Assembly (NCBI GenBank): GCA_946965045.2
Contig: OX337236.1
Location: 744,001 to 808,000, forward strand
Source: Epithemia pelagica
Taxonomy: Eukaryota; Protista; Bacillariophyta
DNA length: 64,000 nt
Direction: 5' to 3'
Shown here: positions 2,452 to 34,006 of the stretch, one piece after another
How positions within the stretch are numbered: position 1 is the stretch's first letter
How the letters are laid out: each line of letters starts with the position of its first letter
The notes under the pieces: generated by a model
The model's database searches: none
Seen by the model: the letters and a program-made list of their open reading frames with translations, nothing else
What the model was told of the DNA's origin: nothing
Translations under genes and position numbers: made by a program

Positions 2452-2495
2452 TCACTAATCCTCATGACTCACCCCCGCTAGGGGGTACTTCTTGG

Positions 2496-9625: not shown

Positions 9626-9634
9626 AAAATTATT

Positions 9635-10056: not shown

Positions 10057-10254
10057 AATTCCCGGTCTTCATCTCTTCCCTTGCGTCTTGGTCCCTTGGT
10101 CGAGCTATCCATTTCACTGAAGTATCGTTCAAACGGCCGATCGTTCCAGATTGCGTCGAACTTGTCCCTGTGAATCCGACGCGAGTCGACGACTCCCAGT
10201 TCCGGGAATGCATGGAACATGAGCGACCAACTCGCCCCCAGGAGGGGGGTAGGA

Positions 10255-10335
10255 GTCGACCATGATCTTTTCTATGCCTCACTCCACAAGGACCAATCAC
10301 AACAAGCCTTTAAAAATTCCTTGTTCGACGTTCAA
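10255..10335 (+). repeat. Third partial copy of the helicase promoter segment
   Basis: gtcgaccatgatcttt...caaggaccaatcacaac...ttaaaaattcc...gttcgacgttcaagtca resembles 39000-39087 and 9703-9810. Confidence 0.75.
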
Positions 10336-10529
10336 GTCATTGATTTTACGATTTATCTACTTCTTCATCATCCTCTTGATCAATATCCTGTGTGGGACCA
10401 TCAGGATCCGAAATTCGACTTCTTGGTCGACCCGATCGATTCTTTTGGCCAGTTTTTCCCGTTCGCGACGACGGCGACGACGTGGTGGATTGCAAAACAA
10501 GTGATTCATTTCAAACACCCATGACCCAT

Positions 10530-11287
10530 TGTTAGGATTCTCACCGAAAACTAGGTGGCGAAACCTACAACTCATCGAATGATGCTAGTATTTTATGGCA
10601 TCCGATGACATTTTCCTAAAAGTGAGAAAAGAATGTCGGCATGCTCGCGAAACTATAAATTTGGCCACGGCATGCTCGCAGTGCACGCGTTATCGGCGAC
10701 CGCTCGGATATTAACTATGGCCCAACACGTGCGCGCCCAAAACTATCACGTGCGCGCCTCTACTATCCGAGTACGCGCATCCACGATTCGACCTAACGGT
10801 CTATGTAATCAAAGCACGAATCACGATCACGCGAGACCATATCTCTGTTCCCACAAATCCAAGAATGCAAACAGCAACGCGCCCAGGACAAGACTTATAC
10901 CACGACAAAGCAAGAGCTGTTGCATCCCATACATGTTATCCATCACCCTATACATTCAATATACACCAATGCCGGTCTACTCCAACCAGTGAGGACCTAT
11001 CACACCAGATCCATGGCCGTATGCAAGAGCCAGGACTTCGGCACCGTCAACCACCTTAGTTAGTAATCATCTCACAATCATTAATATCACCATTTTAACA
11101 CTCATCTTAAGACTAACCTCTTATCAGTGGACCGACTGCCCCCACCCACGGCGGACTTCGACTTGCAACTCTTCTCTGACCCGTGGAGGATTGTTGTATC
11201 GGTTGGTGATTCGATTGTCGGCTCAGCGAGCCTTTTACCTATCCTACCTATCTGTCTAACCCCTGTTGAATCGAGAGAAGTTTATCA
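10530..11287 (+). repeat. 5' LTR (758 bp)
   Basis: Starts tgttaggattctc, ends gaagtttatca. By eye it is identical to the 3' LTR except for a 3-bp indel (ctaggtggcgaaacc vs ctaggtgaaacc). Confidence 0.97.
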
Positions 11288-11301
11288 GATTAACAGTCTC
11301 A
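11288..11301 (+). other. Candidate primer-binding site complementary to a tRNA-Asn(GUU) anticodon arm
   Basis: GATTAACAGTCTCA directly follows the LTR. Its reverse complement TGAGA-CTGTTAA-TC has a 7-nt loop with a central GTT. Confidence 0.5.
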
Positions 11302-11325
11302 TCGTTTATTTCCGAGAAGCTTTCG

Positions 11326-12081
11326 ATGTCTCACGACGATTCCAACCTCTCTATTCGACACATCTTTCATTCCTTCCAACAAAGCGGGGAGGAACTCCAT
11401 CCACCCGTGGCCCATCCGGGCGAGCCCTTGATTGAAACTCCGAAACCGACCCCGACTCAGGCCAGTGCTCCGAATCCCTTCCAGACCCCGGACCAAGTGG
11501 TCCAGCCTCCTTCGATCCCGACTCAACCTTCGACTCCGCCTCGCCGTTTGAACCCTACTCGCACCCGACGTACGAGCCGTCTTCTTACTGCGCATATCCG
11601 ACACTTCCGCGAGCCGACTGAGTCGACTACCGACCCCGACGTGATCCGTTCCACGACCGAACGCGAGATCGATTTCCAGTCCGTCCAACCCGTGACTGAC
11701 CTTGAGGACATCCAACGACTTCTCGACCTCTTGAACCAGTGCTCGAGACGCCGTTTCATTGTCCAAGCCCTGTTGGGCAACCCTGTGGAACCCATCCGTA
11801 TTCGATTCATCTCCTTTGAACGTCCAACCAACTACTTCCACACCATCTGGATCGTCAACTCGACGACGAATCCGCTACCTACCCCGACTACTCGTCTCGA
11901 CGAGTACGTCTCCTTTGTTCACGAGATCCATCTCTGCCAGGATTTCCGTGCGACTATCTACCCTCTCTTCACTCAACACGTGAACCACTTGTTGGAAGAC
12001 GACGACGTTGAAGAACTAGCCACTACAGTGACCGATTCCGCATCTCGTCTTCAGTACCGAGCCGAAAGTGACCAAGAATAA
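11326..12081 (+). CDS. Extra 251-aa ORF between the PBS and gag of the copia element; function unknown
   Basis: ATG at 11326. Pro/Thr-rich N-terminal half and a globular-looking C-terminal half. It ends 334 bp before the gag ATG. Confidence 0.55.
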   Translation: MSHDDSNLSIRHIFHSFQQSGEELHPPVAHPGEPLIETPKPTPTQASAPNPFQTPDQVVQPPSIPTQPSTPPRRLNPTRTRRTSRLLTAHIRHFREPTESTTDPDVIRSTTEREIDFQSVQPVTDLEDIQRLLDLLNQCSRRRFIVQALLGNPVEPIRIRFISFERPTNYFHTIWIVNSTTNPLPTPTTRLDEYVSFVHEIHLCQDFRATIYPLFTQHVNHLLEDDDVEELATTVTDSASRLQYRAESDQE

Positions 12082-12415
12082 GTAACTTTACGTAGTTTCT
12101 ACACCAAACCAGACACAAGACCGAGTTCCGTCCAAGACTTAAACTCAACGCACATCCGGGTACCCTTGGTCGCACAACACGCCACACATTCCCGTCAAAT
12201 CGCGAAAATTCGGCGAAAATTTGTTGAAACTCGGCGAAAATTTGTCGGAATCAACGGAAATTTCCAGGAGTCGCACATCACAACACACATCCGGGTATCA
12301 CATACGTGGTACATACGTGGCACACGTGGTACATCCGGGTTCACATCACATCACACATTAAATAAACCACATCACACCGCACATTAAATAAACATCGAAC
12401 CAACCAAATAACATC

Positions 12416-14008
12416 ATGGAAGCGACACCTCCCAAGACACCGTTTACTCCTCCTGAGGACAAGTCAAGTCATATAACCGACCAAGATCTCTTCGATCATA
12501 TAACTAAAGGCATCTTTGGTTGTAATGATGAACGAGCCCAATCACTTCAAAAGTGGATGCGACATCATGGTTTTGAACATATCCTTCATGTCCTCGACCA
12601 TGTTGCAACTGATCCCGAGGAGACACTCAAGGATCTCATGCAATACAAGGTTGGAAAGCAAGTCAACGACCTACAGACAAGTACAAGATTACAACTCAAA
12701 CTAATGGCATATTGGTTACTACAACAACGGCAACTCCAACATGGAAAACTACCCCGTGCTACATGGATGAACCTCACGAGGGACCAATATGACGATTGGA
12801 GGATCAACACCGACTTTACCAAGTCTGGTATGAACCAAGACCCAGTTTCTCCTCTGAAATCACCTGCACACTCCGTATCATCCCGATCTCCCACTACATC
12901 CTCTACAACATCTCAATCCATGTTAGATCTCTCTGCTTTCAAGAAAGGAACCAAAAGAGATGCAACAGCATTTGAATCATTCAAAGACGAACGATACTTT
13001 GATTCGTTTTGGCGTGTATTCAAATCAACTGCGAAAGCACAAGGATTGTCGAATGTTCTTGATTTCAATTACAAGGTACCCAAGGATGACGAATGCGCAG
13101 AGTTACTTTTCCGAGAACAACAAGTCTTTGTCTATTCTGTACTTGTACGTATTATCCAAACCGACCAAGGAAGAGCATACGTTCGAGAACATGAACATGA
13201 TGAAGATGCAAGAGCCGTCTTGAAGAAACTCCATGTTTTACACACTGAATCTGATCTAGCTAAGCGAGACGTGTTACGCCTAACAAGCTACATTTCGAAT
13301 CTTCGACTGGATGACTCTTGGCGTGGTACAACTTGTCAGTTTCTCCTACATTTCCAAGAACAGCTACGACTTCTGGATAACCTTGTACCACTGTCGGATC
13401 GTATCCATGACCATACAAGGATGACCTTCCTTATGCAAGCTGTTGAAAAGGTACCTGATTTAAGACGAGTCAAGATCTTGGATAACGTTGTCAACACAAA
13501 ATCTGGAGCCAAGTCTCTCTGTTATCAATCATATTTCCGCCTGCTTCTTGATGCTGCTTTTGACCATGACCAAGCTACCCGAACTTCTGCGTCTAACCGT
13601 CGTCGTCATGTAAAGCAACATGAATTTCAGTTGGATGAACCTTTTGAACCAGTGGAGCCCCCTGACTACCAGATCAACAACACGAATATCCAATCCGAAA
13701 AGTCCCCAACTTCGTCGAAAATCAGCCTTCCAAGAGATGTATGGTTTAAACTCTCTGAAGAGGATCGGCAAATCATTGTCGACTTCAATAAATCCGTCCA
13801 AGATTCCCCGACAACTCCACGCAAGGTCCAAACACATTCTCTTGACATTGATCCTGAACCGGACCCTGATCCTGATGCCAACAACATTGGTGATACCCAT
13901 CAAGATGCACCAGAACAAGATCCATTCGATACATCCTCTGATCCGGTTACCCAGTTCGTACACCAGGCTATTGCATCGACAGATATCAATCATCCAGCAT
14001 CTGACCTC
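12416..14008 (+). CDS. gag: Copia gag (5' part of the gag-pol polyprotein), cut at codon 531 by the DNA transposon
   Basis: Typical copia gag segment (FKKGTKRDATAFESFKDERYFDSFWRVFKSTAKAQGLSNVLD...GRAYVREHEHDEDARAV). The listed C-terminus HLRREMGPGA is read-through into the TIR. Confidence 0.9.
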
Positions 14009-14730
14009 CATCTAAGGAGGGAAATGGGCCCTGGCGCTTGATTTCCACCCCCAAAAGCGAATTTCTAGAAAAAATTCACCGAATTAAAATTTTTTATGCG
14101 CAGTTTATTTTTATATGCGCAGTTTTTAACTATAATCCTGCTTTCCCAACTAAATCTGCAAATCTAGGTCGAACAATGCACATTTCTCTAGCTAGTTCTA
14201 GAGATCGAGCTGACTATCACGCGCATGCAACAATTTTAATGCGCACAAGCCCGCGATCAAACCACGAATAACGCGCGCCACACTCCGATAATGCGCACTA
14301 CAACTATCTGGCGCGCTCGACCCCCCCGAGACGCGCATGACGCAACCCTCATGCGCAAGCGTCTGTCCCCTCACCTTTGAATCACGAATTTCCACTCCCA
14401 CCACATCACACAGCAGCTGCCAGAAAGACTGACGCACATGGATGTCCCAAAGAATGTCTCAGATGGATCCTCCTTCCCAATCACCCAAACCGCGGGGATT
14501 ACCAACTCGACACTCTGATCCATCTAACAAAACCGAACAACTTAGAATACTAGTCATTCAACAATCAACGACCACCAGAATCGATGCTCATTCATCTCCC
14601 TCCACCTCCACCCAACACACCACAACAAACAACAACAGCAGCAGCAGCAACAACAGCAATCGATCACCCAACGCTATCGAGATTCCCCTGTTCAATCCCA
14701 TTATCTATCCAGCTTCTTTCATCAACCTAA

Positions 14731-15610
14731 CAGCTCTGCCATTCCAATCACGCTACAATTAAAGCGGCTTGGGGCATCTGTCTGATTGTTTCTTGGTTCC
14801 TTTTCAGCCACCTTTTTGTTGCTTGCTTTCTCTCTGCCGAGATTCCCTTTTCAATCCTTTCACCTATCCAACTTCTTTCACCAACCTAACAGCTCTGCCA
14901 TTCCAATCACGCTACAATTAAAGCGGCTTGGGGCATCTGTCTGATTGTTGCTTGGTTCCTTTTCAGCCACCTTTTTGTTGCTTGCTTCCTCTTCAGCCAC
15001 CTTCACTCCAAAACCGCTGCACCAGAAGAAGAGGAAGAGGAACTCAAGCACGGCCAGAGCATTCGAGACATTGACACTTACACTATCTTGCAGCTCTGCC
15101 ATTCCAATCACGCTACAACTAAAGCGGCTTGGGGCATCTGTCTGATTGTTGCTTGCTTCCTTTCAACCACGACCTTCACTCCAAAACCGCTACAACACTT
15201 CACTCCAAAACCGCTGCACCAGAAGAAGAGGAAGAGGAACTCAAGCACGGCCAGAGCATTCGAGACATTGACACTTGCACTATCTTGCAGCTCTGCCATT
15301 CCAATCACGCTACAACTAAAGCGGCTTGGGGCATCTGTCTGATTGTTGCTTGCTTCCTTTCAACCACGACCTTCACTCCAAAACCGCTACAACAGGAAAA
15401 CAAGAAGAAGAGGAACCCAAGAAGAAGAACGACCACCAGAGCATTCGAAATATTGTCGACATTTGTCCTATCTTTGACACTTGCACTATCTTGCAGCTCT
15501 GCCATTCCAATCACCACGCTACAATTAAAGCGGCTTGGGGCATCTGTCTGATTGTTGCTTGTTTCACTCAGCTCTGTCCTTCATTCCAATCACGCTATTA
15601 CAATTAAAGC
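14731..15610 (+). repeat. Mosaic direct-repeat array in the left arm of the transposon
   Basis: Core cagctctgccattccaatcacgctacaa(t/c)taaagcggcttggggcatctgtctgattgtt starts at 14731, 14890, 15091, 15288 and 15494, with a degenerate copy at 15569. Intervening segments are themselves homologous mosaics. Confidence 0.9.
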
Positions 15611-16251
15611 GGTTTCGGGCTATCTGCTGTTAGATTGTTTATCAAGAACCCTCCTGTCCTCGTGATACTCCGACTTGAATAGAACAGACCCAAAGCAAGC
15701 AGTGTGACACGGTGGTAGCCAGTTGCTTCTGTTCTATTCTTGTCGCGAGATTGCTTGGACAACCAACCAACCCCTGGTTTTGGAGTAGCAAATTCTGGCA
15801 CCGATTGTTGGATCACAACGAACAAGACGCTACACATAAAGCGCATCGTAGTGTATTCCTTCGATTTGGTTGTTGTTTTGTTACCACCAGAGTTCAGGAC
15901 CAAACCAAAGACGCTACACAATTCAGCGCACACTTTTTACTGTTTAGACAAGTACACAAGGTTGTCTCAAAGACGCTACAATTAAAGCGCTTCCTCGACT
16001 ACCCTTGTTGTTGTTGTTGTTGAAACAAAGACGCTACACAAAAAGCGCATCGTGACAAGTACAAAATGGCGGGCAACCGCATCAAGGGCCCTCGCTACAA
16101 AAAGCCACCGACCGCCAAGAATCCTGGTGACCCTTCCTCAATGAATGATGAAGTGCGAAACAAAAGAAAGGACGTGTCGACTATGACTGTTTCTGGTACC
16201 AATCATACACTTTGAACACACACAAGCGAGGAATCCCACTACACCGGTATT

Positions 16252-19200
16252 ATGCCCATTACATACGAAAGTGTCCTCAATTGGTATGAAAGTGTTTTCC
16301 AAGACAAATCAGGAAAATGGACAACAGTGGAGGTACCACATGACGGCCATTATGTGAAGATATTCCTACCAATCTGTTATTCGCCTGCATTCCAAGATAT
16401 CATCTGTCACTCCGTTTTCTGTTTCACAAGAATTAAGAACGAGATGGATGATGATGACAAGTTGACTCCAATGGTTGCTCGACTGTTGTTCAAAAAGACT
16501 CTCTACAGTCCTGTTTCCAATATTTGGAATCAGGCATTTGGGACGACAGTGATAGACAGTGCCGAGAATCTGAGACAAACCATTATCAGATTTCTTTCCT
16601 CTCATGGCTTAGTCTCTAAGAAGACACGCAAGGGGATCGGTGGGATTGGAGAAGCATTGAAACGATACCTTCTAGATGATTCCTCCCTTTACAGGAAACC
16701 GCGTCTCGTACCTGTTGGTAAAATCGCATGGGTTATCGAACATATGGTGGCCATACACCGTTTCATCTCAGAATCGACATCGGACGAGAACATGGACGTG
16801 ATTTCCAATATCCAAATGGAGAAAGCACTGTTGTATACGATGCCTGACACATGGTTCAAGATGTACCTTGAAGAAAGAGATTCTTTGGTACAATATGGAA
16901 GAAACGGAGACGATGGCGGTATGTTCTACGATCTACTGCATTATATAGAAAAACAAGAGGTACTGTCTGCCAGGAAATCGAAAGAAATTGCCGTGCAACG
17001 TCGGAGTACAGACTCGCCAGCAAAAAAGAGACAGAAGATCGTCGCTGGTAATGATCCTACTGACGAGAGAAAGGAACAAGTACTACCAACTTCCATTACA
17101 ACGTTGAACCAAGTCGCCCTCAAATCAGACCGTGTAGAAGAGGTCAGGAAGATTATAAGCGACGACAATGAAAAAACCGCAGACAACGAGGTAAGATGTT
17201 CGAGCGACTTGCCAAGAACCGAGAAGGATTAGACAATCTCAAAAATGATTGATCTCTTTGTCTTAGAGACGTTGTGCTTCCATAAACAAGGGAAATGAGG
17301 AGACAGGTGATGGTGTGGTACCACCGCCTTTCATTGAAATTCCACACCTTCCTGATCCTATAGTAAACCAGAAGAGAAGAAAAGACTCATGGGACTCGAA
17401 TGAATCCATCGACAACATTGGTGACGGTTACTTAGACAAGTTCGCGGAAAAACAAGCTAACAGAAACAACGAGAACATCAAGTCGGCCATGAAGCTAGCA
17501 ACCCAGTATGCTAAGAGTATGGGGAAGGACAACACGCATGTCGAAATCAAGACATTATTTAGGTGCTCACTATGCATGTCTTACAGTGGGTTGATGAATG
17601 ACCAGGACCCTACAACGCGTGTTTTGCATATCCCACATAGACATCGTCGGAGAGATCTTTGCTACAACACTTCAAGGACGGGCATGCCGATTGAGTCTTT
17701 CTATACTTGTTTGAAATTGATGGTCCATCACAACCATCAGAACCTAGTATATGTTGACAAGGTAACATTTGATGAAGCAAACAGGAACCCATTTCCTAAG
17801 AAAATTCCTATGTCATCATGGAGACAACAGGATCCAAAGACACTGATATTGGCGATCATTGCCTTGACAACAGCAACTGATGTCAGCGACCCAGCTTTAT
17901 TTGCTTTCGAAATCGACAAAAAGATACTTCATATCTACGAACCAATAAATAATCGATCAGACCAATACTGGGAAGGAACGACGCGTCATGTACTACGGAA
18001 ATGGGACCTGGTCAATACGTCAAAAGGTGCCCCGCCTGTCAGTCTATGTTATGACCCATCATTAGTGGAAGAAGATGAAACAACACATGATACAAACAAG
18101 GAATGTAACAAGTGGCGATATCGCATTGTGAAAATGCCAGAACCTAAGAAGGATACTCCAAAGCCAATGCCACAAGCTATTGTGATCAGAATGCTTGGAA
18201 ACATAATGAGTAGTCGACCAAACCCGGGTCGGAAAGAAGGTCAGATAGACAAGAGTATGACGATATCCAATTGTTTTTCGAGTAATCAAATAAGGTACAA
18301 TAATGAATTTTCGAGAGGACTAGAGCATGCTGTTGAAGGCAATTCGATTTCTCCTTTGGTGTTGGGACCTGACAATTTCGATGGCAACAGAGACGACGAT
18401 CCTGTTGAAGTGGGGTTTTCACGTGGTACCGATAAATACGAATACCAGGAGAACGTCGATCTATCTGATGGTGGGTGTTCAGAGACGTGGACTACGGATG
18501 GTGACATATTGTTCCTATCGTGCCCGAAGGTGGGATTAGAACCCAAGGAGGTGTTACTTGACTCCAAACTTTCCAAGAGAGATATAAATCGATTGCTACC
18601 GACCGTTGTATATTGTCCAGATTCTTGTGTATGCTGTAACAGGGCATTGAAAACAGATACAGACAGCGAAGTCTGTACCCTCATCCCATGTGGACATCTG
18701 GTTCACGGAAATTGCTTACGAATACGGTTCAAGTATCATAATGTATGGTGTCCCCAGTGTGGACAAAAGATCAAGAGTAACATCCACATGTTTGGTGCGG
18801 AGAAGATAGAGGGACACAAGAAAACAGCGGAAGAAACTACAACTACGAACGAGGGATTCCCTGAAGAGGGACATAGGAAAACAGTCGAAGACACTACAAC
18901 TACGATTGAGGGACGCCCTGAAGAATCATCAAAAAAATCACCTGTGAGTAACAAGCCGTCAACACTAGAACAAAGAGGAGTTGAGACAAAATACAAGCCC
19001 GAGGTTTGTTCGATTTGTATGACCAGAAAAGTGGATTGTGAACTGTTTCTTTGTAGACATACATTTTGTCGGGAATGTGTTGGAGATTGGATGCAGCGGG
19101 GCCACAACACATGTATGGTGTGCAGCCAGGATATTCAAAGTCTATTGTACTTCTGTCCTATGACACGTTCTGTTCAAAGAACATATACTCATCCTTCTGA

Positions 19201-22200
19201 ACACAAAGCAATCTATCAGTCACCAGAGGGTGAGAAGCCTAAATACCAGCAATGGGGAGGAAATAACTCATCACGTTCCGTTGCAATGCCTGCGAATTGG
19301 GGTAACCGGAGTGAGCTGCCTGAAGAAAGACATAGAACAGAGCAAACCCAACATGATAACGAAAGAACCAAGGACAAGAGAGAGAATCCACATGGACTAT
19401 GGGGAGGACGGAATCAGAACAACGTCCTGTCGACAGCTCGAAGCCCCAGAACAAATGAGTGGGGTTCGCAACCTGAACATGACAGGCCAGTGTATTGTCA
19501 GCATGGACAGAATCGATTCAATGATGATCATCCAGGATCGAGAGGATCTAATACATCAGATTATCATGGGTCTCGTCATTCACATTTCGATCAAGATAAC
19601 CAACAAACTAGAAGAGGAGTCATTGAACGACAAGACCAACATGGATACCATGATAACCACCAAGACGAGTCTAGAGGGAGAAGAGATCAAATCATGGAAA
19701 ACACTTACCGGGATAGAAAAAGAAGACATGATAATCAAAATCAATTGTCTAATCGACATTCGATGGATTGGAGGAGATTCTCTGGATACAACGAACAGTC
19801 CAGAGAACATACAAGGCACCATTCGGTATACAGAGATAGCCACAATCAATGGTCTAATCGACATCCGATGGATTGGGAGAGATTCCCTGGATACAACGAA
19901 CATTCCAGGCACCATTTATCACTTAGAGACAGTCATCCTGGACACAACGATCATTCTAGGCGTACCCGTCAGAGAGAGCCTAACCGTCCCTCAACTGATA
20001 GAGGTAATAGCCAACCAAATCAATCACCTCGTAGAGAGGGAGAAAAGGACGTTCATCACACTACTGCGAGTCGTGGAGGGCAGGATGGCCTATCCAAACT
20101 TGGTTGGAATTCCAAGGACAATCAGGAGAGGGATGATCGGAACAGACAGAGCGGTCAGAAAGCAACCTCCAGTCACCAAGATGAATGTGGACAAGGGGAA
20201 GAGATACAAACCAGAGATGGCAACGGTCCTACAGACAAACAAAAGGGCAAGGAATGTGACAAGCAAGAGATTGTTGCTTACGAACAACACGGACATTCAG
20301 GAGATAACGGGTCTAAGAATGCCAACAACACACCTGACAGTGATAATCCGTCTAGCTGTCACAATGACAGTGTCAACCAAGATGATGCGACACAAACCAA
20401 AGAAGGAAAGGATAGTACCGACAAACAAAAAGGTAGCAGCAAGAACAACGATGACCAAATGACAAAAAACGACCATAACAAGGGAAGTAGCATCAACACG
20501 ACAGCACAAACGGATCAGCGCATACAAGACGAACGAGGTACGAAGGAGATTCACGAGTCTCCAATACACGGTAATCATGACGATACTGACGAACAGAATA
20601 CTTCACCGGAAAGGAAAAGAAAAGGATGTAAGACCATTGGTTCATCCAGGGGACTACCCACGAACAAGCAACGACGACAAGAGGGCCTATCGAAGTTGAC
20701 ACTAACACATGAAACGATGAAGAAGTATATGAGACGACAGGCTGAGAAACCTAGCCATTTGACGACAAAATTCTCCAAACCAAATGAATCCGATCATACA
20801 GAAATGTGTTTTTTTGGAATTCCTGACATGGACAAGGTAGCAAAAAGACTATGCGACTTACTATCACTCTGTCTCAGTAGCAATGATGATCGGAGAATGT
20901 TCGGCATCTGCTATACAAAGGTTCTGAAAGACTACGACATCACACCAACAGACCTCCAGACAATCATGGGAAAATTACCTAACATGTACGAACAAATGAA
21001 AGACATGGTTGGTGAAGTGACGGAAGATCCAGCAAGCCATTGTTGTTTCGAAGACAACAAGCTTCATGTGACAGAATGTGACCCGAAGTTCTTAACAACC
21101 CGGTCACCATGTGCCTTCTTGGTAGAATGTGTACTGAATCGCTGTCAACGACATAAGGGACATCGGAAATACCCCAAAACCGTGTGGTCTGCGTTTGACG
21201 ATACAATCTTCCATTGTCGCACATCCAAGAAAAACTGTGATGATTGTATGGACCATATTTTCCATGACGTGATCGTTATCATCCCTTTGGCCGGTATATT
21301 TTATACTTCGGCAATGATAATGAATACTGGGTATGCAACATCGGAATGCACTTCATCTTTGGTAGCACTACCTATATCCTGGCTGCGCTTACGACATTCC
21401 GACGGCCAACCAAGTGGTGGGGCATTCCTCAAAAAGGTTGTCAAGTGTTGGTATATTGATTGGACACAAAGTGCAAAGAGAGTTGTCCATGAATGCTACC
21501 AAGCGTCTGATGTCGAAAGTGGTTCTCCACTTTGGGCCCCTGATCATTATACAAGTGAAAAGTCCAGACCAAAAATGACACCAAATGACCAACATTCTCT
21601 TAGAGTGTGGTATCGTGAAACACTGCTAAATAAAGCCAGTGCTAACAAGACTGGATGCCGAAAGTACGTTCATGGAGCATTGTATAGAAACCTGTCCCCT
21701 CCGCCTGATACTTCGGTCCGTCCGCTCCTGTTTGATGTAAGGGAAACCGGAGAAGATACAACATTCATTGTTCGGACACGTGGGTACGCGGGTAAAAACG
21801 AAACCATCAGCCATGTCAAAGTGACAACACTTCAGCAAAATGACAAAAACCTACTTTCATTGTTACACAAGAGGTCATGTCACTTCGCGCAGAGCGGTAC
21901 ACTAGAGAGATCAGCCAATGCAAGGTGTAACCATGGTGATATGGGGACCATGACATCTGTTGGTGTGTGCACAAAAACGGGTGGCAGAAGTACATTCTTT
22001 TCTGACAAACTTTTCAAAATATCTCCAAACATGATGAATATATTGCCAAAAATCTGTGGAGGTGTTCGGCGATTCTGTGAGAGGAAATTCCCTGGTGTGT
22101 TATCGGCTTTCAGACACCTGGAAACAAACTTCGGTTTGGATGTCCCAAATGAATTGGGAGGAAACGAAAGGGGTGTGTCATCATCCATCATTTTGAGTTG

Positions 22201-22588
22201 CGATTTGATGAATGCAAGCCACTATGATATTCATGATGCATCGGTGTCCTTTACAATCTGGACAGAAACCAACCCGGGCAGCACCAACGATTGGTATTTC
22301 GTCCTTCCCAATGTCCTTATAAAGCATAAGGACAAGACTTATCATGGGCTTTGTATCCGATTATTCCATGGCATTGCGATCGCATGGGACGGGAGAATCA
22401 TCAGACATGGAACATCTGTCCATACACACTCCATACCACCGAAAGACAAGAATGTGGGAAATCATACGATTGGTTGGTTTTTTAGCACAAATGCAAGATC
22501 TTTGAGTGCTACCGTAACACAAAACGAAGATGACAATTCTCATGAAATTGGAGGCTTGGCGTCGGGCCAGAAATCTAGTGACGAATAG
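16252..22588 (+). CDS. ~2,086-aa protein: RING-H2 + RING-HC + low-complexity linker + C-terminal TET/JBP-type Fe(II) dioxygenase domain (exons 16252-17190, 17267-22588)
   Basis: A 76-bp intron GTAAGA…TTGTCTTAG (17191-17266) joins the two ORFs in frame. RING1 CVCC…CGHLVHGNC…CPQC (~18626-18760). RING2 CSIC…CRHTFCREC…CMVC (~19007-19123). Dioxygenase motifs RCNHGDMGTMTSVG, SHYDIHD (HxD at 22220-22228), WYFVLPN and WDGRIIRHGTS (distal His at 22406). Confidence 0.8.
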
Positions 22589-22876
22589 AGATTTCTAATA
22601 TACAAGACCATGTCCACCTATCAGCAAAACCACTACCTACCATCAATCAATGCCTATGATACCCCAAGGGTCTCTAGAAAATTTGGAGCCATTCGAGTTC
22701 TAGAAGCATGAAATTGGAGGCTTGGCGTCGGGCCAGAAATCTAGTGACGAATAGAGATTTCTAATATACAAGACCATGTCCACCTATCAGCAAAACCACT
22801 ACCTACCATCAATCAATGCCTATGATACCCCAAGGGTCTCTAGAAAATTTGGAGCCATTCGAGTTCTAGAAGCATG
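22541..22876 (+). repeat. Tandem duplication of a 166-bp unit spanning the TET-gene stop codon; diverged partial third copy at ~22985-23075
   Basis: catgaaattggaggcttggcg… starts at both 22541 and 22707, and the copies are identical by eye. Confidence 0.92.
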
Positions 22877-23266
22877 TCTTTGCTCCATGTCCATAGAATT
22901 TTGGGACGATGGCAACACCACACCGGTAGGGTATATTGCAAGTCTTTTGGTTGATGATAGACAAGTTCAGAGCCTTTACTGTCAATGCAAATGATACCCA
23001 AATGGTCTCTACGAAAATTTGGAGCCATTCGAGTTCTAGAAGCATGTCATTGTTCCATGTCCATGGAATTTTGCAAAGCCACACCGATAGGTCAGCCCAG
23101 CGAGTGAAACGCGACCATGTTGGGGATGATTACACTTATCCTCACAGTATGTGGTAATACTTACAGTGAATAGTACAGTGTGACGATTTCTGTACACAAA
23201 CGCGACCGATCGGTTATTCGTGGATCTATTTCCAGTTGAACTCTCGTTCATATGACAGCAGAGGTT

Positions 23267-26101
23267 TCATAAAAATCCAAAGAAGAAGCAACATTTTTCT
23301 CTGGTCATGGATACTACTATGACCGTTCCACGGCTATTTGAGGTTGATGTGGCAGGGAGTTGGTTTTGGGATCCCTTTTTTGTCCTTATTTCATAAGGCG
23401 ACTTCCCTTCCTGGAGAAAGGTGACATGATCTTCTTCAAGACCTGTTGCTTCCTGCAGCATTTCCAAGCTTTGCATCCACCAGATATTTTCTGCAAGTTG
23501 CGACTCAAAAATTCCTTTTCCACGTTTCTGTACCGTTTTTGCATTCAATTTCACAATTTCCTTATGATTACTTTCCTCTGACTCCACATCAAGCAGTCGT
23601 GCTGGTCCAAAATTCTGAATCTGTTGTATAATGTGTATGAGATTGTGGAATTTTGGTATCATCCACCCGTTGGACATCAATTTGCCTTTTTTATCGAGCC
23701 TAGGTGCATATCTCCTGATGCCATCCATCAAAATCCGCACTGATTCGAGAGACTTGGATGCTGTTGTTTGTCCTTCTTGTGAGTCTGGGTCTGTTTCCCA
23801 GAATGTATCCATACGAATCCAGCTGTTGAAACACAAAAGAGTCTCGAATAGATGCAGGAAGTCTATGTATGGTTCCCGCTCATCAACATCCCAGATAGAC
23901 CTGTAAGCAACTGGGTCATCATCAAAAACAGTTTCAGCTGTGATATCAATGTCAACACTATCATCATCATCAAGACGTGTACGTTCGTACTCTTCATCTG
24001 GTGGAGTATCATCCTCATTGTCAGCAATAGGTTCACTTGTCTCTTGCACTTGATCCACGTCCGCTTGACATGTCTTGTTGGTGGTTTTGGATTTTTGCTT
24101 TGCTTGACGTTTTTTCCATTCCGCAACCACCTTGTTCCATTTCTTTGCCATATTCTTCGCAAATATAAGGCGACCTCTGGCAGTGGCACATAGAGCTGCT
24201 GAAGCAAACATGATGCCTACCCACTCATTGGCAGTTACTTTTGACAGGTTACTGATCCCGGTCGAGAATGATGTTCCGGGATATCCAAGTTTCGATGAAT
24301 ACGAGAATACAGTCTGTCTACTTGCCCGAAAGATTGAATTGTAGACATAATCAAACATGGCCCGTTCAGTTTTTGTCATCAACGTGAAAAAGTCAATCAT
24401 GATGTATCTCATTATCCCAGATTTCAATGTATGAAGAACATCACAACTACTGGCCGAGAAAATCCCATGTTCAGAATTGGTTCCTTCACCCAGGTAAACC
24501 TTGGAAAAACAAAGATCGACTGCATATTGTCCCATGTCATGCAATTGGGTTTTTGCAGCTGACACAAGGGTATTGACCCCTCCATCTCTGCTATTTTCTT
24601 GACTCACTTGCGATGTGCTCAAACAGGTAGGAACAGTCAAAGTCGAAAATGTATCATTGTCTCTCTCTTGGTAATCAACATCCTGTTCAGTCAGTTTTTC
24701 TCGATTTTCATTAAGACCCAATGCATTCAAGCACATTTTGTATGTACTTGCAGCGTTGATATAAGAACATTCATGCCATGGGTATCTGCTATCCCTTGGT
24801 TTAATGTTGCAACACCATGATAGTCTTCCAACACTTGGATGATGCGAGGCATACCGACCTGCAAGGTTATCCTGAGACTTCCCGTCTCCTTTGACAACAA
24901 TCATTGGCAATATCAAACGGACAACTTTGATAATCCCATGGAGGCGTAGTTTCATCCATAAACCTTCCTGTTTTTGGATACTGACAAGACCTTCGAGGAT
25001 CTTAGTCAATTGAGCATGATAATTTCGGCAAGGAGTCCCTTTATCGAGGATATGTTTTGCCGCCGATGATTTTCTTTCCATGTCTGTAATAGTCCCAAGG
25101 ATGATCTGTCGCCTTGCTTTCCTCATTTGTGTTTCCGTTAGAAAAGATGGCACCATTACAACAGGCTCCGACGTATATCTTCCATCCCCTGTTGCATGTG
25201 TTTTGTCCATATAACAGACAAGACCAACCACGAAGGCATCTGGATCATCTCTATATTTTTCCACTGTTTTCCGAAATACTTCTCCGTCTTGTATATTTTG
25301 GATGTGCTTGTTTGGAACATATGGACGATACGGATCGTCATCATCAAGGATCGTATTTTCTTTCTTGGTTGCATCGGGGTCTTGTAATACACGCTGTAGT
25401 TGACTGATCAAATCAAATACTGCTGTTGTTATTGATTTCTCACTCTCTGGTACAACCACACCCTGTTTTTGGGTGAATTCCATTGGTACCGGGAAAAATT
25501 TTGCCTTGGGATAATTGAAACCTTTGGTAGAAAACTTTTCGATGAACGTTTTCCTCTTTGAATGGTTGTCCAGGAAGAACCCAGGACCGCATCTTGAGTA
25601 TGTGTCACTCGACCATGCCAGGATCGAATTGTACAAATATTTGGGGCAACCAGCTTTCCGAAGTAACATCATAAGTGAGACCAAGGCTGCATCGTGTTTA
25701 TGAAGTTTCAATTGCTTCCCATCTCTATCAAGGAACGCAGGAAAATCAACCGGGCACTCCTTGCTGTTGCGCAGAATAATATTATCTGTATCACCAGGTA
25801 CATAGTATGCTTTTGGTGGGTCAGCATGCGGAATAGTGGTTTCGTCGTCCATGATATCAATATTCATTGGATCAGCATTCATGTTACTGGCACAATCATT
25901 GTTGTCATCGCCAACATTTGGCCATTTCCTTTGTGTGTTCATTTTCAATTCACAAACTGTTTCGTGACGGCTGATTCCTCTTGCATCGAAACGTGATTGA
26001 CAGAAACGACACACTTGAAAGGATATGAAGGACTCCTCTTGTTGGCTTGTATTTGAGCATCTCTTTCGTGACTTCTTTTTTACTTTACGACGTTGGCCCA
26101 T
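23267..26101 (-). CDS. Plavaka-family transposase, 944 aa (3' end may be spliced or degenerate)
   Basis: N-terminal C2HC finger CRFCQSRFDARGISRHETVC. Motifs GLVCYMDKTHATGDGRYTSEPV (cf. Plavaka xxSDKTxL…PVY), KGDGKSQDNL, CDVLHTLKSGI and IPKFHNLIHIIQQIQNFGPARLLDVESEESNHKEIVK (cf. KxHxLxHY…I..FG…TE..E..H…K). Confidence 0.85.
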   Translation of the reverse strand: MGQRRKVKKKSRKRCSNTSQQEESFISFQVCRFCQSRFDARGISRHETVCELKMNTQRKWPNVGDDNNDCASNMNADPMNIDIMDDETTIPHADPPKAYYVPGDTDNIILRNSKECPVDFPAFLDRDGKQLKLHKHDAALVSLMMLLRKAGCPKYLYNSILAWSSDTYSRCGPGFFLDNHSKRKTFIEKFSTKGFNYPKAKFFPVPMEFTQKQGVVVPESEKSITTAVFDLISQLQRVLQDPDATKKENTILDDDDPYRPYVPNKHIQNIQDGEVFRKTVEKYRDDPDAFVVGLVCYMDKTHATGDGRYTSEPVVMVPSFLTETQMRKARRQIILGTITDMERKSSAAKHILDKGTPCRNYHAQLTKILEGLVSIQKQEGLWMKLRLHGIIKVVRLILPMIVVKGDGKSQDNLAGRYASHHPSVGRLSWCCNIKPRDSRYPWHECSYINAASTYKMCLNALGLNENREKLTEQDVDYQERDNDTFSTLTVPTCLSTSQVSQENSRDGGVNTLVSAAKTQLHDMGQYAVDLCFSKVYLGEGTNSEHGIFSASSCDVLHTLKSGIMRYIMIDFFTLMTKTERAMFDYVYNSIFRASRQTVFSYSSKLGYPGTSFSTGISNLSKVTANEWVGIMFASAALCATARGRLIFAKNMAKKWNKVVAEWKKRQAKQKSKTTNKTCQADVDQVQETSEPIADNEDDTPPDEEYERTRLDDDDSVDIDITAETVFDDDPVAYRSIWDVDEREPYIDFLHLFETLLCFNSWIRMDTFWETDPDSQEGQTTASKSLESVRILMDGIRRYAPRLDKKGKLMSNGWMIPKFHNLIHIIQQIQNFGPARLLDVESEESNHKEIVKLNAKTVQKRGKGIFESQLAENIWWMQSLEMLQEATGLEEDHVTFLQEGKSPYEIRTKKGSQNQLPATSTSNSRGTVIVVSMTREKCCFFFGFL

Positions 26102-26665
26102 GATGGTACGATGCTGGTGGTTTTAGATTTTGGTTTGGAATGAAAAATGCTCTGTAATCGATTTCTGCAAATTGAGACATCGGTGGTCAATCTTGTGGTA
26201 TATATCAGAATTTCTCCGCATTGGGTGGATCGGCCGACGTTGGTGCATAAAAGCGACTGAAAATCGCTTATGTACATGAACGGATCATAATATTTTCAAA
26301 CGGTCGTGTGTATTTACTTAATCCAATCCAGCCTGCCGGGTTAGATACCAACGGTGATAGCAGCGATTGGAATTCAAACACTGTGTCAATGCCGAGGATA
26401 CCGACACTGTCGACATTAGTAAGGAAATGACAATCATTCAAACCCATGCACTAATGTTCCATGTTTCAAGTACGATGTACTTGAAACCACCTATGCTCAT
26501 CTTCATACGTTCTCCAAAGGAACATCGTTCAAACACGGAGTTTATGATTCAAACATGGAGCATTCCAGCATTTGAATTTGAATGGTTGTCCATCAGAGGA
26601 CTTGTTGTTACCCTGCTCTTGTTCACATCCTTGTCATAAATCAGACGGAGCATCCAAGATAAACG

Positions 26666-28658
26666 ATGGCAGGAGTCACCACCAGAAATGCAGCTCCAAC
26701 GAGGCGTCGACCCTTAGCAGTCCGAAATGCAAACTATGGAAGTAATCAGAAAGAGGTTGAACGACAACGAAGAAGCATCTTGGCAGCAGTGGCAACAAGA
26801 AATAAAGAGAATCTTCCTAACAAGGACGGGACAATTACAAACAAAGATGCTCTTATTGCAGCAGCCAATGGAGGTTCAGTACTCCAAGAAGATAGTTCTG
26901 ATGACGAGGAAGAAGAGGAACAGATCTCGATGAACAACGATCAAGCACAAGCACAAGAAGGCACAACTGTGGAAGGGAGTGGTAATCTTTTGGAGCAGGC
27001 AACAAATTCAGAAAGAGATGGAGCCGATGTGACTTCAGCAGATGATAGCAATAATGAACAGGGTGGGCTGAGAACACAACCATCATCTGGTTTTGCGCAA
27101 CCAACAAACATGGCAGTTAATAACATGGAGGAAGACGACGTCGGTGTAAATATTCTCACTGGACCTGAAATGCAACGAGCATTGCAGAATATGAACAATG
27201 GACCCAGTGAGTATGATGGAGATGATTTTGATCCTAATGAGAGACATTTTCCTGCTGGAGGACTTGTCAGTAAGTTGTTAGATGCACAAAATGGAGGGGG
27301 ACAATTTGTCGGTGAGACGGCTCTAATGATGGGGGTGTTTGTGGGTTGAATGCATCAGGTGATACCTTTGCTAACGACGTTTCTTCCCTTTCGGATATGT
27401 CGTCATCTTCGTCATCTACTTTGCTAACAACAGGGCCTGATCAGGCGATGGAAACTCTTCTACAAGACGATATTCAAAATCAGTTGGCACAGGAAACACA
27501 GACAACAACAGTACACCATAATCAATCATCTTGCCCGACAAGTACGATTGTAACATCCACTACACACAAAGGTTCTGTTGAAAAGGACAAGAATAAGAAG
27601 CAAAAGCCGAAGAAAAAGCCTGAGGTGGTATCGGAGAAGTTCTTTGATACATTTGTTCGGAAGGTGGCATGGCGTTATGTCAAGTATTTCTCCATGTCCG
27701 AAGATACTAAGGCAGATCCGAATGGTCTTTGGGGGAAGTATGGCAAAACATATTTTACTGAGCACTATTTCAAAGGCAAAGGTATTACGGATGCAAAACA
27801 ACAAGAGGAGTGGTGGATTGAACATTCACCTTATATGCTTGACAAGTTCCGAAGCAAACGATCAAATGTTCTGGCTTCCATGCGAAAAGCATTTATAAGT
27901 AAGTTTCAATCGAAGAGTGAATGTGTTGGTTCATCACGTCGTCTTCTCATAAAGAGATGTGAGATAATTTGTTGCTGAATCTAGAACATGTGGGTCTTGA
28001 TCTATGGCGTGACAGTAATTTCCAGCGGAGGTATCCATGCCTTTTGAACGACTGTGAAGACTTTGGGCCAATGCCTACCCTGGAAGAATTTCTGTTATTG
28101 AGAGGAGAGAAGTGTGACAACTATGCCTATTCATATCTCTTGCAATTGTTTGGTCCATGTGTCTATGGTGAGAATATGCATAAAACCGTGATTGATTTCA
28201 ATTTTGGTGACCACACTGAGCAGCAGGGAAAGGAACATTGCGAAAAGGCCTTGAAGTTATTCACTTCAAGTGACGAGGCATTCATATTGACCATCCTTGT
28301 GGATTGCTGGGATGTGTGGACTCACATGGGCAAGACCACTTTCAAGGCGAAACTATTTGAATTAAATCCAAGGTGGTACAATGAAAATGGTGTTGATCAA
28401 ATGATTGATACATCCTCAGCAAGGTATCCTCGCTTCAAATATTCAGGCAGTTGGAACTCAAGTCGATGTATGAATGAGGATGGTATGGACTATTTTGAGG
28501 ATATGGAAGAGAAAATCGCTCGTGAAGACAGAGCAGGCGACCGCGGTATCTGGTTCATGATGTTTCTCAATGGGCAATATCGCTCTCGAATGGGGTATGC
28601 AGATGATGATGCTGTGACAAGGCCTTCTAAAAGGCCACGAAAACGGTCGTGGCAGTGA
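26666..28658 (+). CDS. 605-aa uncharacterised transposon accessory protein (exons 26666-27269, 27359-27898, 27985-28658)
   Basis: Two phase-1 introns: GTAAGT…CATCAG (89 bp, CTAAT branch site) and GTAAGT…AATCTAG (86 bp). They join three listed ORFs in frame. Acidic N-terminus; C-terminal domain with TSSDEAFILTIL…W and SW…GMDYFEDM…R. Confidence 0.8.
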
Positions 28659-28858
28659 TTGATCAGAGTGACAATTGGTTTCATTTCATATACTACTCCT
28701 ATATAGCTACATGTATTGTGTTCCATTCATTCGCTGGTTGTTAGTGGGAGTGTGTGCATGGTGTTAGTTAAATGCACTGTGTTCAACTTGCTTGCACTTG
28801 ATGCTGGAGTAATGCGCATGATGGTGATGTGACACAATCAAGGATGAGTGCATACATT

Positions 28859-29070
28859 GGAGGGTATGTGATGACTGTTGGTTCTTGACTGTGCATGAAG
28901 GTGGAGGGATGTGATGACTATTGGTTCTTGACTGTGCATGGTGTTGAAGTTGGTGAAATGTGGGTCATGCGCTTGCTGGTTCTGGAAAGCACATTTTTAG
29001 TAATAACGTGAGGAAGGGCCATGCGCATGTTCTTGTAGGTGTGCGCGTGTTCTTGTAGGTGTGCGCGTGT
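28859..29070. repeat. Subterminal short direct repeats in the right arm
   Basis: ~39-bp pair ggaggg(t)atgtgatgact(g/a)ttggttcttgactgtgcatg (28859, 28903) and a 20-bp tandem gcgc(a/g)tgttcttgtaggtgt repeated ~2.5 times (29022-29070). Confidence 0.75.
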
Positions 29071-29168
29071 CCTGCGCGCGGATGATTCTAGTAGGATGCG
29101 CTTAGGGGTGCTTTCTTATCGATAATTAAACCGCCATAAACTGGCGTACCGTTCCTTCCTTAGATGTC

Positions 29169-32100
29169 AGCAACATCTTGTCAACTTCTACGACAAAGTC
29201 AAGTCCTAAAGTCAAGTTCAAGTCTTCTGCCGATCACAAGCAAAAGGTTCATATGTCACGGTATCTATTCTCCCGCAAATCCACCTTTTCTGGTAATCAA
29301 CTCATCGATCGAGGTGCCAATGGAGGCCTTGCAGGATCTGACATGCGCATCCTTGCCAAAACCGGACGTCATATTACCATCGTAGGTATTGACAATCATG
29401 AATTGACTGGCCTTCCAGTTGTTACCTGTGCTGCCAAGTTTGATACAAGTGATGGACCCATTATTGGTATCTTCAATGAGTATGCCCACTATGGAAAGGG
29501 TTTATCTATCCATGCCCCAGCGCAATTTGAACATTTCGGCCTATCTGTCGACGAACAATCCGTCAAGGTTGATGGCAAACAACGCATTACTACCCTTGAT
29601 GGACGTGCATTGCCCTTACGAATCAAGGATGGCCTTGCATACATTCAATCTCTGGGAATCCCTTCTGATGACGATATGGATAAATATCCGCATATTGTGT
29701 TCACTTCACCCCATATCTGGGATCCTTCTGTACTTGACCATACCCATCCAGACCCCCATCAAGACCCTGCACCGAACTGGACATCTGTGGAGACTGATGG
29801 TAGTATGGAAACGTACCCCTATGACCAATATGGGGAGTATACCGATCGCGTTGTATGCACTTTGAATCTCCTCCTTGATCTCCCATATGATCATGGCCCC
29901 GATACACCTTCCTTCTTTTCCATCTATGCTGATCAAGATGGCAACGACCCCACACTTCATGCGTCTGTCCACAAGCTCTACAAGGAACAATACGACTGGA
30001 AGAAATTTCGCCCTTTCTTTGGGTGGCAATCGGAAGATGTAATCGCAGATACGTTCAAGCATACAACTCGTCATGGACACATTTCCTTTGACCAGGATAC
30101 CTTGAAGAAACATTTTAAGGCCCGGAATCCTATCCTTAACCTACCACGACGGCATGAACCCGTTGCCACTGACTCCATCTTCTCCGACACCCCGGCTGTT
30201 AACCATGGTGGCAAGATTGCTCAGATTTTTGTTGGTCGTGATACTTTGGTTACTGACATTTATGGTATCAAGTCTACCAAGCAATTTGTCAATACCCTCC
30301 AGGATAACATTCGTACACGTGGTGTCATGGAGACTTTGATCAGTGATGGTGGTTCGTCACTTATTTCCCACAAGGTCAAGGATATTCTTCGCACCCTTCT
30401 GATTGGTGAATACCGTTCCGAGCCCTATCATCAACACCAGAACAAGGCTGAGAACCGCTACCAGACCGTTAAGCGTATGACCAACGCTATCATGAATGCC
30501 TCTGGTTGCCCTGCTTCTGCATGGTTACTTTGTTTAGAATATGTGTGTGACCTCCTCAATCACACTTCCTCTCCCACCCACTCTGGCCGCACCCCTCTTG
30601 AGACTCTTACCGGTACCCCACCCGACATTACCCATCTCCTTTTCTTTCCTTTCTGGGATGAGGTCTACTATCGTGTCGACCCTTCTGAACCTACCTCCGG
30701 TTCTTACCCTTCGTCTCCCGACGAGAAGCTTGGCCACTGGGTTGGTTTTGCCCACAATGTTGGTGATGCCTTTACTTGGAAGATCCTCACTGCCGACAAC
30801 GTCATCATCTACCGTTCCGCTGTCCGGCGCGTTGCCTCCACTACCCCCAACCTTCGTGTGGATATCTCTTCAGGGGAGGAGTCGCCGCATAAACCCACTG
30901 ACAAGCAAGGTGACACTGTCTTTATTCGCAGCAGAAGTGAAGACCCATCCACACCTATGCCAACAATTGACTATGACGATTTAGTTGGACGCACATTCCT
31001 TTGTGACACTGAAGAGAATGGGGAGCGCCACCGAGCACGAGTAATCAAACGAGTTGTCGACCTGGAACAAGATGCAACCAAACAAGAAGATCGACTCAAA
31101 TACATCTTTCGCAAGTCTAACTCCAATGTTGATGAGATGATCTCCTACAACCAGCTCATGGAATACATTGAAAGGGATAATCAAGCCCAAACGACAGGGG
31201 ATAGTCTCTTCCGATTCAGAGACGTTATTGCACACCAAGGACCTTTGAATTCAAGCGACCCAGACTATAAAGGGAGTAAATATAATGTCCTTGTTGATTG
31301 GGAGACTGGGGAGACGACATACGAACCTCTATCTCTTATTGCAAATGATGACCCCATCACAGTCGCCATCTATGCCAAGAAAAATGGTTTGCTGGATCTA
31401 CCTGGATGGAAACATCTCAAGCGATACGTTAAGACAAGCAAAAGACTCATTCGAGCAGCTAAACAATCCAGGATCAAACAAGTTCGTCGCTCTATCAAGT
31501 ACAAGTTTGGTTTCCAAGTACCTCGCACCTATGAAGAAGCAGTGGAACTAGACAAGCAGTTTGGGAACACGAAATGGCAAGACGCAACAGAATTGGAACT
31601 CTCACAGATCCAATCGTATAACACTTTCAAGAACCATGGAAAAGCCAAGTTCATTAATGGGAAATTGGCCAATGCACCAGAAGGATATCATAAGATAAGA
31701 GTACATCTGGTCTTTGATGTCAAGCATGACGGAAGGCACAAGGCACGACTTGTCGCAGATGGACATCTCACCAAGGAACCCGTTGAGACCATCTATTCAG
31801 GGGTTGTCTCCATTCGCAACCTTCGCATTGCCATATTTCTTGGAACCATGAACGACATGGAAATATGGGGAGCAGATATTGGGAACGCATACCTAGAAGC
31901 ATTGACAGGAGAGAAGATTTTCATCATTGCAGGACCAGAGTTCAAGGAGTTAGAAGGACATATCTTGATCATCTACAAGGCATTATATGGTCTCAAATCC
32001 TCAGGTGCTCGCTGGCATGACAAACTGTTTGATGTTCTCATTGATATGGGATTTTCTCCAAGCAAGGCTGACCCTGATATTTGGATGAAGAAGGCTCCTG

Positions 32101-33257: not shown

Positions 33258-34006
33258 GATTCTCACCGAAAACTAGGTGAAACCTACAACTCATCGAATG
33301 ATGCTAGTATTTTATGGCATCCGATGACATTTTCCTAAAAGTGAGAAAAGAATGTCGGCATGCTCGCGAAACTATAAATTTGGCCACGGCATGCTCGCAG
33401 TGCACGCGTTATCGGCGACCGCTCGGATATTAACTATGGCCCAACACGTGCGCGCCCAAAACTATCACGTGCGCGCCTCTACTATCCGAGTACGCGCATC
33501 CACGATTCGACCTAACGGTCTATGTAATCAAAGCACGAATCACGATCACGCGAGACCATATCTCTGTTCCCACAAATCCAAGAATGCAAACAGCAACGCG
33601 CCCAGGACAAGACTTATACCACGACAAAGCAAGAGCTGTTGCATCCCATACATGTTATCCATCACCCTATACATTCAATATACACCAATGCCGGTCTACT
33701 CCAACCAGTGAGGACCTATCACACCAGATCCATGGCCGTATGCAAGAGCCAGGACTTCGGCACCGTCAACCACCTTAGTTAGTAATCATCTCACAATCAT
33801 TAATATCACCATTTTAACACTCATCTTAAGACTAACCTCTTATCAGTGGACCGACTGCCCCCACCCACGGCGGACTTCGACTTGCAACTCTTCTCTGACC
33901 CGTGGAGGATTGTTGTATCGGTTGGTGATTCGATTGTCGGCTCAGCGAGCCTTTTACCTATCCTACCTATCTGTCTAACCCCTGTTGAATCGAGAGAAGT
34001 TTATCA
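33252..34006 (+). repeat. 3' LTR (755 bp)
   Basis: Near-identical to 10530-11287; followed by the CCCAT TSD. Confidence 0.97.

Follow-up and report, generated by a model that had tools for sequence, protein, structure and literature searches.

Plavaka transposons of fungi that carry a TET gene were reportedly first noted by Iyer et al. in 2014. Such TET-carrying PlavakaB elements occur in Agaricomycetes, for example in Agaricus bisporus and Gymnopus confluens (Kojima 2025, PMC12730594). Giant Plavaka elements have been described in the red algae Bostrychia moritziana and Chondrus crispus (10.1101/2025.02.11.637652). Both TET/JBP-carrying transposons in fungi and oxygenase-carrying giant Plavaka elements in red algae are already known. 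The element described here spans positions 14009-29166 (15.2 kb) of the window, which is the whole 64,000-nucleotide stretch of DNA that was analysed, and it lies within a Ty1/copia element of an apparently diatom-like host. The diatom-like label comes from the original prediction and from one Atlas cluster in which Bacillariophyta is the most frequent phylum. The element is likely a defective copy of a young cut-and-paste family of about 25 copies, 18.4-18.5 kb in length, that encodes a DDE-type transposase of the EnSpm/CACTA-Plavaka kind and carries as cargo a gene for RING fingers fused to a TET/JBP-fold dioxygenase (RING-TET).

The family shares several features with the TET-carrying PlavakaB elements, including cut-and-paste movement, 2-bp target-site duplications (TSDs), CATC..GATG termini, and an H(3-4)H motif in an EnSpm-like transposase. 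Both carry a TET/JBP-fold dioxygenase, for which the proposed role is escape from silencing by 5-methylcytosine (5mC). Unlike the fungal elements, the element here has an apparently diatom-like host and is 18.4 kb long. Its transposase, which lacks a conserved C(2)C motif, and its dioxygenase are too divergent for the PF18759 and PF12851 profiles. The dioxygenase and RING fingers form a single fusion protein of about 2,150 amino acids (aa), and conservation extends to three further genes. Similar to the giant elements of red algae (17-19 kb), it is large, carries several accessory genes, one of them with a 2-oxoglutarate (2OG)-dependent oxygenase domain, and has tandem repeat arrays adjoining these genes. 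However, the red-algal cargo consists of PAG1-3 (N6-methyladenine (6mA)-methylase/SET protein, ParB-oxygenase), whereas the cargo here is RING-TET together with two Cys-rich genes and an accessory gene that is unrelated. Red-algal copies are mostly degenerate, while copies here are 98.6-99.9% identical over their right 3.6 kb. New here are the host lineage, the RING-TET fusion, the Cys-rich pair, and an enzyme and a transposase beyond current Pfam models. A literature search returned no paper linking TET-carrying or giant oxygenase-carrying Plavaka elements to diatoms.

Boundaries, Copies and Defects of the Window Element

The ends of the element are precise. Its 15-bp terminal inverted repeats (TIRs) match at 14 of 15 positions (CATCTAAGGAGGGAA at the left end vs CATCTAAGGAAGGAA at the right end), and each is flanked by TC. 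In a genome-wide comparison, 600-bp probes over each junction break exactly at 14008/14009 and 29166/29167. Many uninterrupted copia copies have the empty site, in which the two flanks abut with a 2-bp overlap equal to one TC (for example, C18:2647859-2648158 and C18:2648157-2648456). A longer TSD and chance ends were both rejected because these empty sites set the junctions to the base. When the element and one TC are removed, the left and right copia open reading frames (ORFs) join in one frame with no stop. The two 300-nt long terminal repeats (LTRs) of the host copia element (10557-10856 and 33276-33575) are 100% identical, suggesting that the copia element and the insertion are both very recent. 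The original prediction, made from the DNA letters, had claimed the exact ends, the TIRs, the TC duplication, the restored copia frame, and a very young host site, and all of these were confirmed. The uninterrupted copia copies that it named as a check agree with its junctions at 14008/29169, and its view that the element is a delimited TIR transposon, inserted very recently and belonging to a young family with multiple copies, is supported. The copia element has more than 30 further genomic copies that are 99-100% identical over the probed 300 bp; together with the identical LTRs, this indicates that the copia family is apparently currently or very recently active.

The terminal 200 bp of the element were used for a copy census in the 60.5-Mb assembly. 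The left end occurs about 25 times and the right end about 27 times, mostly at 96-100% identity, and 11 other copies were retrieved for comparison with the window copy (12 in total). Perfect 2-bp TSDs (TC, TA, AT, CT, TG, or CA) flank 11 of the 12 copies (10 others and the window copy), so the further copies with 2-bp TSDs for which the original prediction suggested a search do exist. Seven of the retrieved copies are 18.4-18.5 kb and one is 18.0 kb, while the shorter copies (5.4-16 kb) are internal-deletion derivatives. The window copy is nearest to an 8-kb derivative on C18. In at least three copies, located on C17, C2, and C16 (the 18.4-kb copy), neither the 1776-codon RING-TET frame nor the 1292-codon transposase frame is interrupted, and at least seven copies have an uninterrupted RING-TET ORF of 1757-1776 codons. 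The sole copy with mismatched 2-bp flanks (gt/ga) is the 14.2-kb copy at C16:3130006-3144168, which has gagt on both sides. This mismatch may be due to inter-copy recombination or aberrant insertion.

Internal deletions with microhomology are typical of faulty gap repair. The window copy lacks a 3.44-kb segment that is present in all 18.4-kb copies (about positions 9125-12566 of the C17 element). In a genome-wide search, only the window locus spanned the deletion junction. The same junction is present in a second public assembly, in a 6.8-kb segment with 100% identity, which argues against an error of a single assembly, with the limit that the two assemblies may share reads. Two paralogous Cys-rich genes were lost through the deletion (374- and 399-codon open frames; BLASTP E 2e-8 between paralogs), and the last 341 codons of the transposase were also removed, leaving 944 of 1285 aa. 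The C-terminal loss matters because relatives with as little as 35% identity still conserve this domain. In all copies the RING-TET gene begins at 16066, and its codon 50 is CGA in C17, C2, and C18 vs TGA in the window copy, a CpG-to-TpG change. The window copy is therefore a private, dated, defective derivative rather than an intact autonomous element, and its deletion and nonsense codon make it most likely non-autonomous. The original prediction described three apparently intact genes in an active element. Its accessory gene does look intact, but its transposase is truncated, its RING-TET gene is interrupted, and the start it gave at 16252 is an internal ATG; the claim of an active element does not hold for this deletion derivative.

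Transposase and RING-TET Dioxygenase

PlavakaB elements, including all TET-carrying Plavaka elements, have 2-3-bp TSDs and the termini CATCA..TGATG (Kojima, PMC12730594). The termini here (CATCT..AGATG) agree with these at 4 of 5 terminal bases, and the 2-bp TSDs agree as well. Atlas language-model features, which provide no alignment or E-value, gave the transposase a Plavaka score of 0.97 with 208 shared features, and 41 of 100 matches were Plavaka clusters. All ten best family-bearing Atlas matches share Plavaka or its clan, and Transposase_21 (EnSpm) clusters were further off. The C-terminal part resembles DUF6830-type clusters found with Plavaka. Conserved motifs in the transposase are YxDKTH, GDxKSQDN, IPK[FY]HNLxHI (the H(3)H motif, PKFHNLIH in the window copy), and ESNHK. 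The DDE-type core and H(3)H motif remain in the truncated protein, which has lost the conserved C-terminal domain (HPNYQSxGPWRDWV ... VGVVDENPEMI), which is kept in relatives that are only 35-37% identical.

Several results weigh against a Plavaka assignment. PF18759 had no match in the 944-aa protein at E up to 10 or in the 1292-codon frame at E up to 1, relatives included, and a PF18759 scan of the whole genome yielded 0 candidates. The CMC/Transib C(2)C (CxxC) motif was not found; the conserved cysteines are C-x13-C (W-x-C...PW-x2-C). An AlphaFold2 (AF2) model of the transposase core from eight sequences reached a pLDDT of 31.7 and was not used for fold search. Pfam scans of all ORFs, the full-length copies, and the environmental relatives detected RING fingers and copia RVT_2 only. 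Word-indexed protein searches returned transposase relatives that were near-identical or 51-60% identical, and the search with words from the C-terminal half returned relatives at 41-43% identity, all of them without names or Pfam marks. A metagenome locus scan with the transposase profile produced no confirmed relative. On balance, the transposase is probably Plavaka-like, but it is not a proven member. The Plavaka identity given in the original prediction thus agrees with the language-model features, termini, and TSDs (PMC12730594), but the PF18759 profile check that it proposed failed.

The RING-TET protein is encoded by two predicted exons, and its dioxygenase domain is C-terminal. Searched exhaustively with HMMER, the C-terminal 528 aa had 656 homologs (378 at E <=1e-10). 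The AF2 model of the domain on the homolog alignment has a pLDDT of 86.6. The predicted structure has the double-stranded beta-helix and TET-specific N-terminal extension of TET2, NgTET1, CcTet, and CMD1 (PDB 4NM6, 4LT5, 7VPN, 7CY4-8; Z 15-20), although sequence identity to these enzymes is 9-14%. The best 22 Foldseek matches are all TET2, CMD1, CcTet, or NgTET1 (E 3e-11, 3e-9, 3e-7, and 3e-6, respectively), ahead of FTO. VIA-align gave Z 20.0 over 300 residues for TET2, 16.4 for CMD1, and 15.0 for CcTet and NgTET1, with other oxygenases at <=11.4. An Atlas fold search led to PF12851 and fungal Tet-like PF20515 clusters. By all three methods the fold is nearer to TET/JBP than to other 2OG oxygenases.

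The HxD...H Fe(II) triad common to the four enzymes (H288, D290, H350) is invariant in 46 sequences, as is D293 at HxD+3. D293 is at the position of CMD1 D350, NgTET1 D234, and TET2 N1387, which contact N4 of the flipped cytosine (PMC7854593), and an Asp with this contact is shared with CMD1 and NgTET1. Two arginines bind 2OG in TET2, R1261 and R1896 (PMC7854593). Upstream, 44 of the 46 sequences have an Arg (R189) that may match R1261.

Other results weigh against the TET/JBP assignment. The Arg equivalent to TET2 R1896/NgTET1 R289 is absent across the family, with N368/H369 in the last strand (motif N-H-T-x-G-W-F), and canonical use of 2OG is therefore uncertain. The missing Arg recalls Chlamydomonas CMD1, where that Arg is unused and ascorbate replaces 2OG. 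PF12851 touches one of the 46 aligned members (E 0.003) and does not match the window protein, and a PDB sequence-profile search with the TET family profile had no match. The sequencing runs that match the element are DNA, with no RNA run among the matches. Contigs of the three best-matching runs (X1-X3, all DNA assemblies) reach 509 kb and read through the predicted RING-TET intron. Based on the model and the invariant residues, we accept a predicted TET/JBP fold and cytosine-type pocket. The TET/JBP-RING protein of the original prediction is consequently retained for its RING finger and its fold (Foldseek, VIA-align), but not by the PF12851 check. About 66 TET-like matches occur genome-wide, in identity classes of 93-100%, 61%, about 50%, and 34-39%, including a cluster of 620-650-aa TET-like ORFs within 85 kb on C5 (C5:847441-931968). 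These matches represent a lineage-specific expansion like those described in mushrooms.

Conserved Cargo, Methylation and Alternative Readings

The full-length element has five genes, encoding RING-TET (~2,150 aa), two paralogous Cys-rich proteins, the 1285-aa transposase, and the product of the three-exon accessory gene. The accessory gene ORFs are intact in all copies compared, and the gene is conserved in a second family of the same genome (family B) and on two environmental contigs (L030 and L032). Family B elements are 22-25 kb, have the termini CGTCTAAGGAGG, and contain large tandem arrays with ~105- and 170-bp periods. Their gene order is an ORF1-like region, TET, Cys-rich A, Cys-rich B, transposase, and accessory gene, with 25-54% aa identity. 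The TIRs of the two families are homologous and have the core TCTAAGGAGG in common.

Environmental contigs L032 (ENA ERZ28668934) and L033 (ENA ERZ27314334) have a TET-like gene (28% identity) convergent with a distant transposase homolog (22-30%). The TET-like C-terminus on these contigs belongs to a 1228-1739-aa protein, and there was no Pfam match for these proteins. On L032 the accessory gene follows the transposase homolog; L033 also has a copia RVT_2 gene. Contig L030 (ENA ERZ27315315 k141_2029390, 1-12879) encodes a transposase that is 36% identical over 1,160 aa and a homolog of the accessory gene. It has the terminal CATCTAAGG at positions 38-46 and a 1018-aa cargo in place of the TET gene; this cargo was rejected as a TET protein (hhalign probability 0.1). 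Crude dN/dS among copies of the studied family, with CpG bias uncorrected, is <1, with singleton changes in accessory gene exon 1 as the exception. The five-gene order in two families and the pairing of TET and transposase genes on environmental contigs indicate that the cargo genes belong to the transposon.

An excess of CpG transitions is the usual mark of germline 5mC. Among copies, transitions per site are about 5-fold higher at CpG (0.11) than at other C/G (0.02), indicating that the elements are targets of methylation, as would fit an enzyme with an anti-silencing role. The RING-TET nonsense codon of the window copy is of this CpG-transition type. At least five genomic loci score above the DNA_methylase (PF00145) cut-off. 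On the other hand, the strong CpG decay of the elements shows that the enzyme they carry does not keep them free of methylation, and any protection is incomplete.

In the mechanism we propose, the transposase of EnSpm/CACTA-Plavaka kind would recognise the CATCTAAGG... termini and integrate the element by a 2-bp staggered cut. The window copy inserted very recently into the copia element, and its private 3.44-kb deletion, with 4-bp microhomology, is of the kind left by faulty gap repair. It could presumably be moved only by the transposase of intact copies, such as those on C17, C2, and C16. The dioxygenase may act on 5mC in element DNA and counter methylation-based silencing by the host, and the RING part may contribute a ubiquitin-ligase function.

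Different readings of the window copy and its transposase were considered. It is most improbable that the window copy is itself intact, autonomous, and currently active. Its perfect ends and TSD inside a copia element with identical LTRs would be expected of such an element, its truncated transposase retains the catalytic core in a 944-aa open frame, and the internal ATG at 16252 could yield an N-terminally shortened RING-TET protein. However, 3.44 kb is missing relative to all 18.4-kb copies, relatives at 35% identity conserve the transposase C-terminus that was lost here, RING-TET has a premature stop at codon 50, and the deleted form is at no other locus. Superficial resemblance to Plavaka, with the transposase representing another CMC branch or an undescribed superfamily, is a stronger competitor but still rather unlikely. 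PF18759 had no match at any threshold used, either genome-wide or in distant relatives, the C(2)C motif is not conserved, and the searches gave no alignment-based link to a named Plavaka protein. These results have to be set against the top Atlas matches to Plavaka or its clan, the DUF6830-like C-terminus, the CATC..GATG termini with a 2-bp TSD as in PlavakaB, and two motifs that characterise EnSpm-like enzymes, H(3)H and E..H.

The TET-like gene could also be a passive passenger or an inactive relic of no use to the transposon, which we consider distinctly unlikely. Copies are methylated anyway, as their strong CpG decay indicates, the canonical second 2OG-binding Arg is missing, the related element L030 has different cargo, and no RNA run is among the sequencing runs matching the element. 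Nevertheless, the TET gene occupies an unchanged place in two families that share 42-50% identity, and on L032 and L033 it neighbors distant homologs of the transposase gene. All 46 diverse homologs keep the metal ligands and the Asp that contacts the base, the long RING-TET ORF remains open in at least seven copies, and crude dN/dS is <1. It is conceivable, if improbable, that the enzyme is no plain 5mC oxidase. Because the family lacks the second 2OG-binding Arg, functionally as in Chlamydomonas CMD1, it may use another co-substrate such as ascorbate and place an unusual 5mC adduct on element DNA. With RING E3 fingers, it would then be a self-encoded anti-silencing effector acting on both DNA and chromatin, in a Pfam-undetectable transposon clade that is also found on environmental contigs of other samples.

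In the genome there are several apparently complete master copies of a very young family, a second and diverged family that has the five genes too, ~66 TET-like matches, DNA methyltransferase (DNMT) genes, and a methylation-type mutation signature. The young master copies, second family, methyltransferases, and mutation signature together offer a natural system that can be used to study whether transposons edit the methylation of their own DNA. The window copy is useful as an internal control because it is a dated defective derivative inside a copia element with identical LTRs. The family also contributes a new RING-TET architecture and a group of enzymes in which the co-substrate site is atypical.

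Feature Coordinates and Internal Repeats

Table 1. Features of the window element, its host copia element, and family B copies (window positions unless a contig is given).
Feature	Position	Strand	Basis
Host Ty1/copia element, gag-pol ORF split by the insertion	10557..33575	+	RVT_2 domain, LTR comparison
Left TSD, TC	14007..14008	.	Single TC at empty site of uninterrupted copia copies
Left TIR, CATCTAAGGAGGGAA	14009..14023	+	Same in 12 copies compared
Left subterminal array, five 159-209-bp tandem units and eight palindromic motifs, reaching the RING-TET start codon	14686..16051	+	Repeat analysis (D1-D4, D6, D7)
RING-TET exon 1, premature TGA at 16213-16215 (codon 50)	16066..17190	+	Comparison with other copies
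Predicted 76-nt intron (GT..AG), links exon 1 in frame to 1773-codon exon 2	17191..17266	+	Sequence reading
RING-TET exon 2: RINGs, low-complexity linker, C-terminal dioxygenase domain	17267..22588	+	Pfam, ORF
Weak RING	18620-18760	+	Weak zf-RING_2 match
Clear RING	19001-19141	+	Pfam zf-C3HC4_3, 30.8 bits, above cut-off
Predicted TET/JBP-fold dioxygenase domain	21359..22585	+	Homologs, AF2 model, Foldseek, VIA-align
HxD; distal His (dioxygenase domain)	22220-22228; 22406-22408	+	Alignment
Tandem repeats of 166-170 bp downstream of the TET gene, one unit more than the C17m copy	22541..23073	+	Repeat analysis, copy comparison
Truncated transposase gene, 944 aa instead of 1285	23267..26101	-	Comparison with full-length copies
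Junction of private 3.44-kb internal deletion, AACA microhomology	23290..23293	.	Comparison with full-length copies
Accessory gene, three predicted exons (26666-27269, 27359-27916, 27985-28658)	26666..28658	+	ORFs, copy comparison
Right subterminal short repeats, 43-bp and 20-bp units with TGCGC	28848..29061	+	Repeat analysis (D17, D18)
Right TIR, reverse complement CATCTAAGGAAGGAA	29152..29166	-	Sequence read and copies compared
Right TSD, TC	29167..29168	.	Junction probe
Family B copies, one with TG/TG TSD, the other with mismatched flanks	C17:1183549-1208880 and C3:3780180-3802927

Subterminal repeats were part of the original prediction, and both subterminal and tandem repeats were found (Table 1). 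Eight copies of a small palindromic motif, CGCT-ACAATTAA-AGCG, lie at 14738-16051, within and beyond the 159-209-bp tandem units, the last two of them directly upstream of the RING-TET start codon. This motif could be a putative transposase-binding or promoter element.

Fragments of the element are present in biofilm metagenome runs (X4-X7) and marine sediment metagenome runs (X8-X11), suggesting that the host or a close relative lives in those habitats. Fragments from one of the biofilm runs (X4) have 0-3 differences per 155-350 nt from the element.

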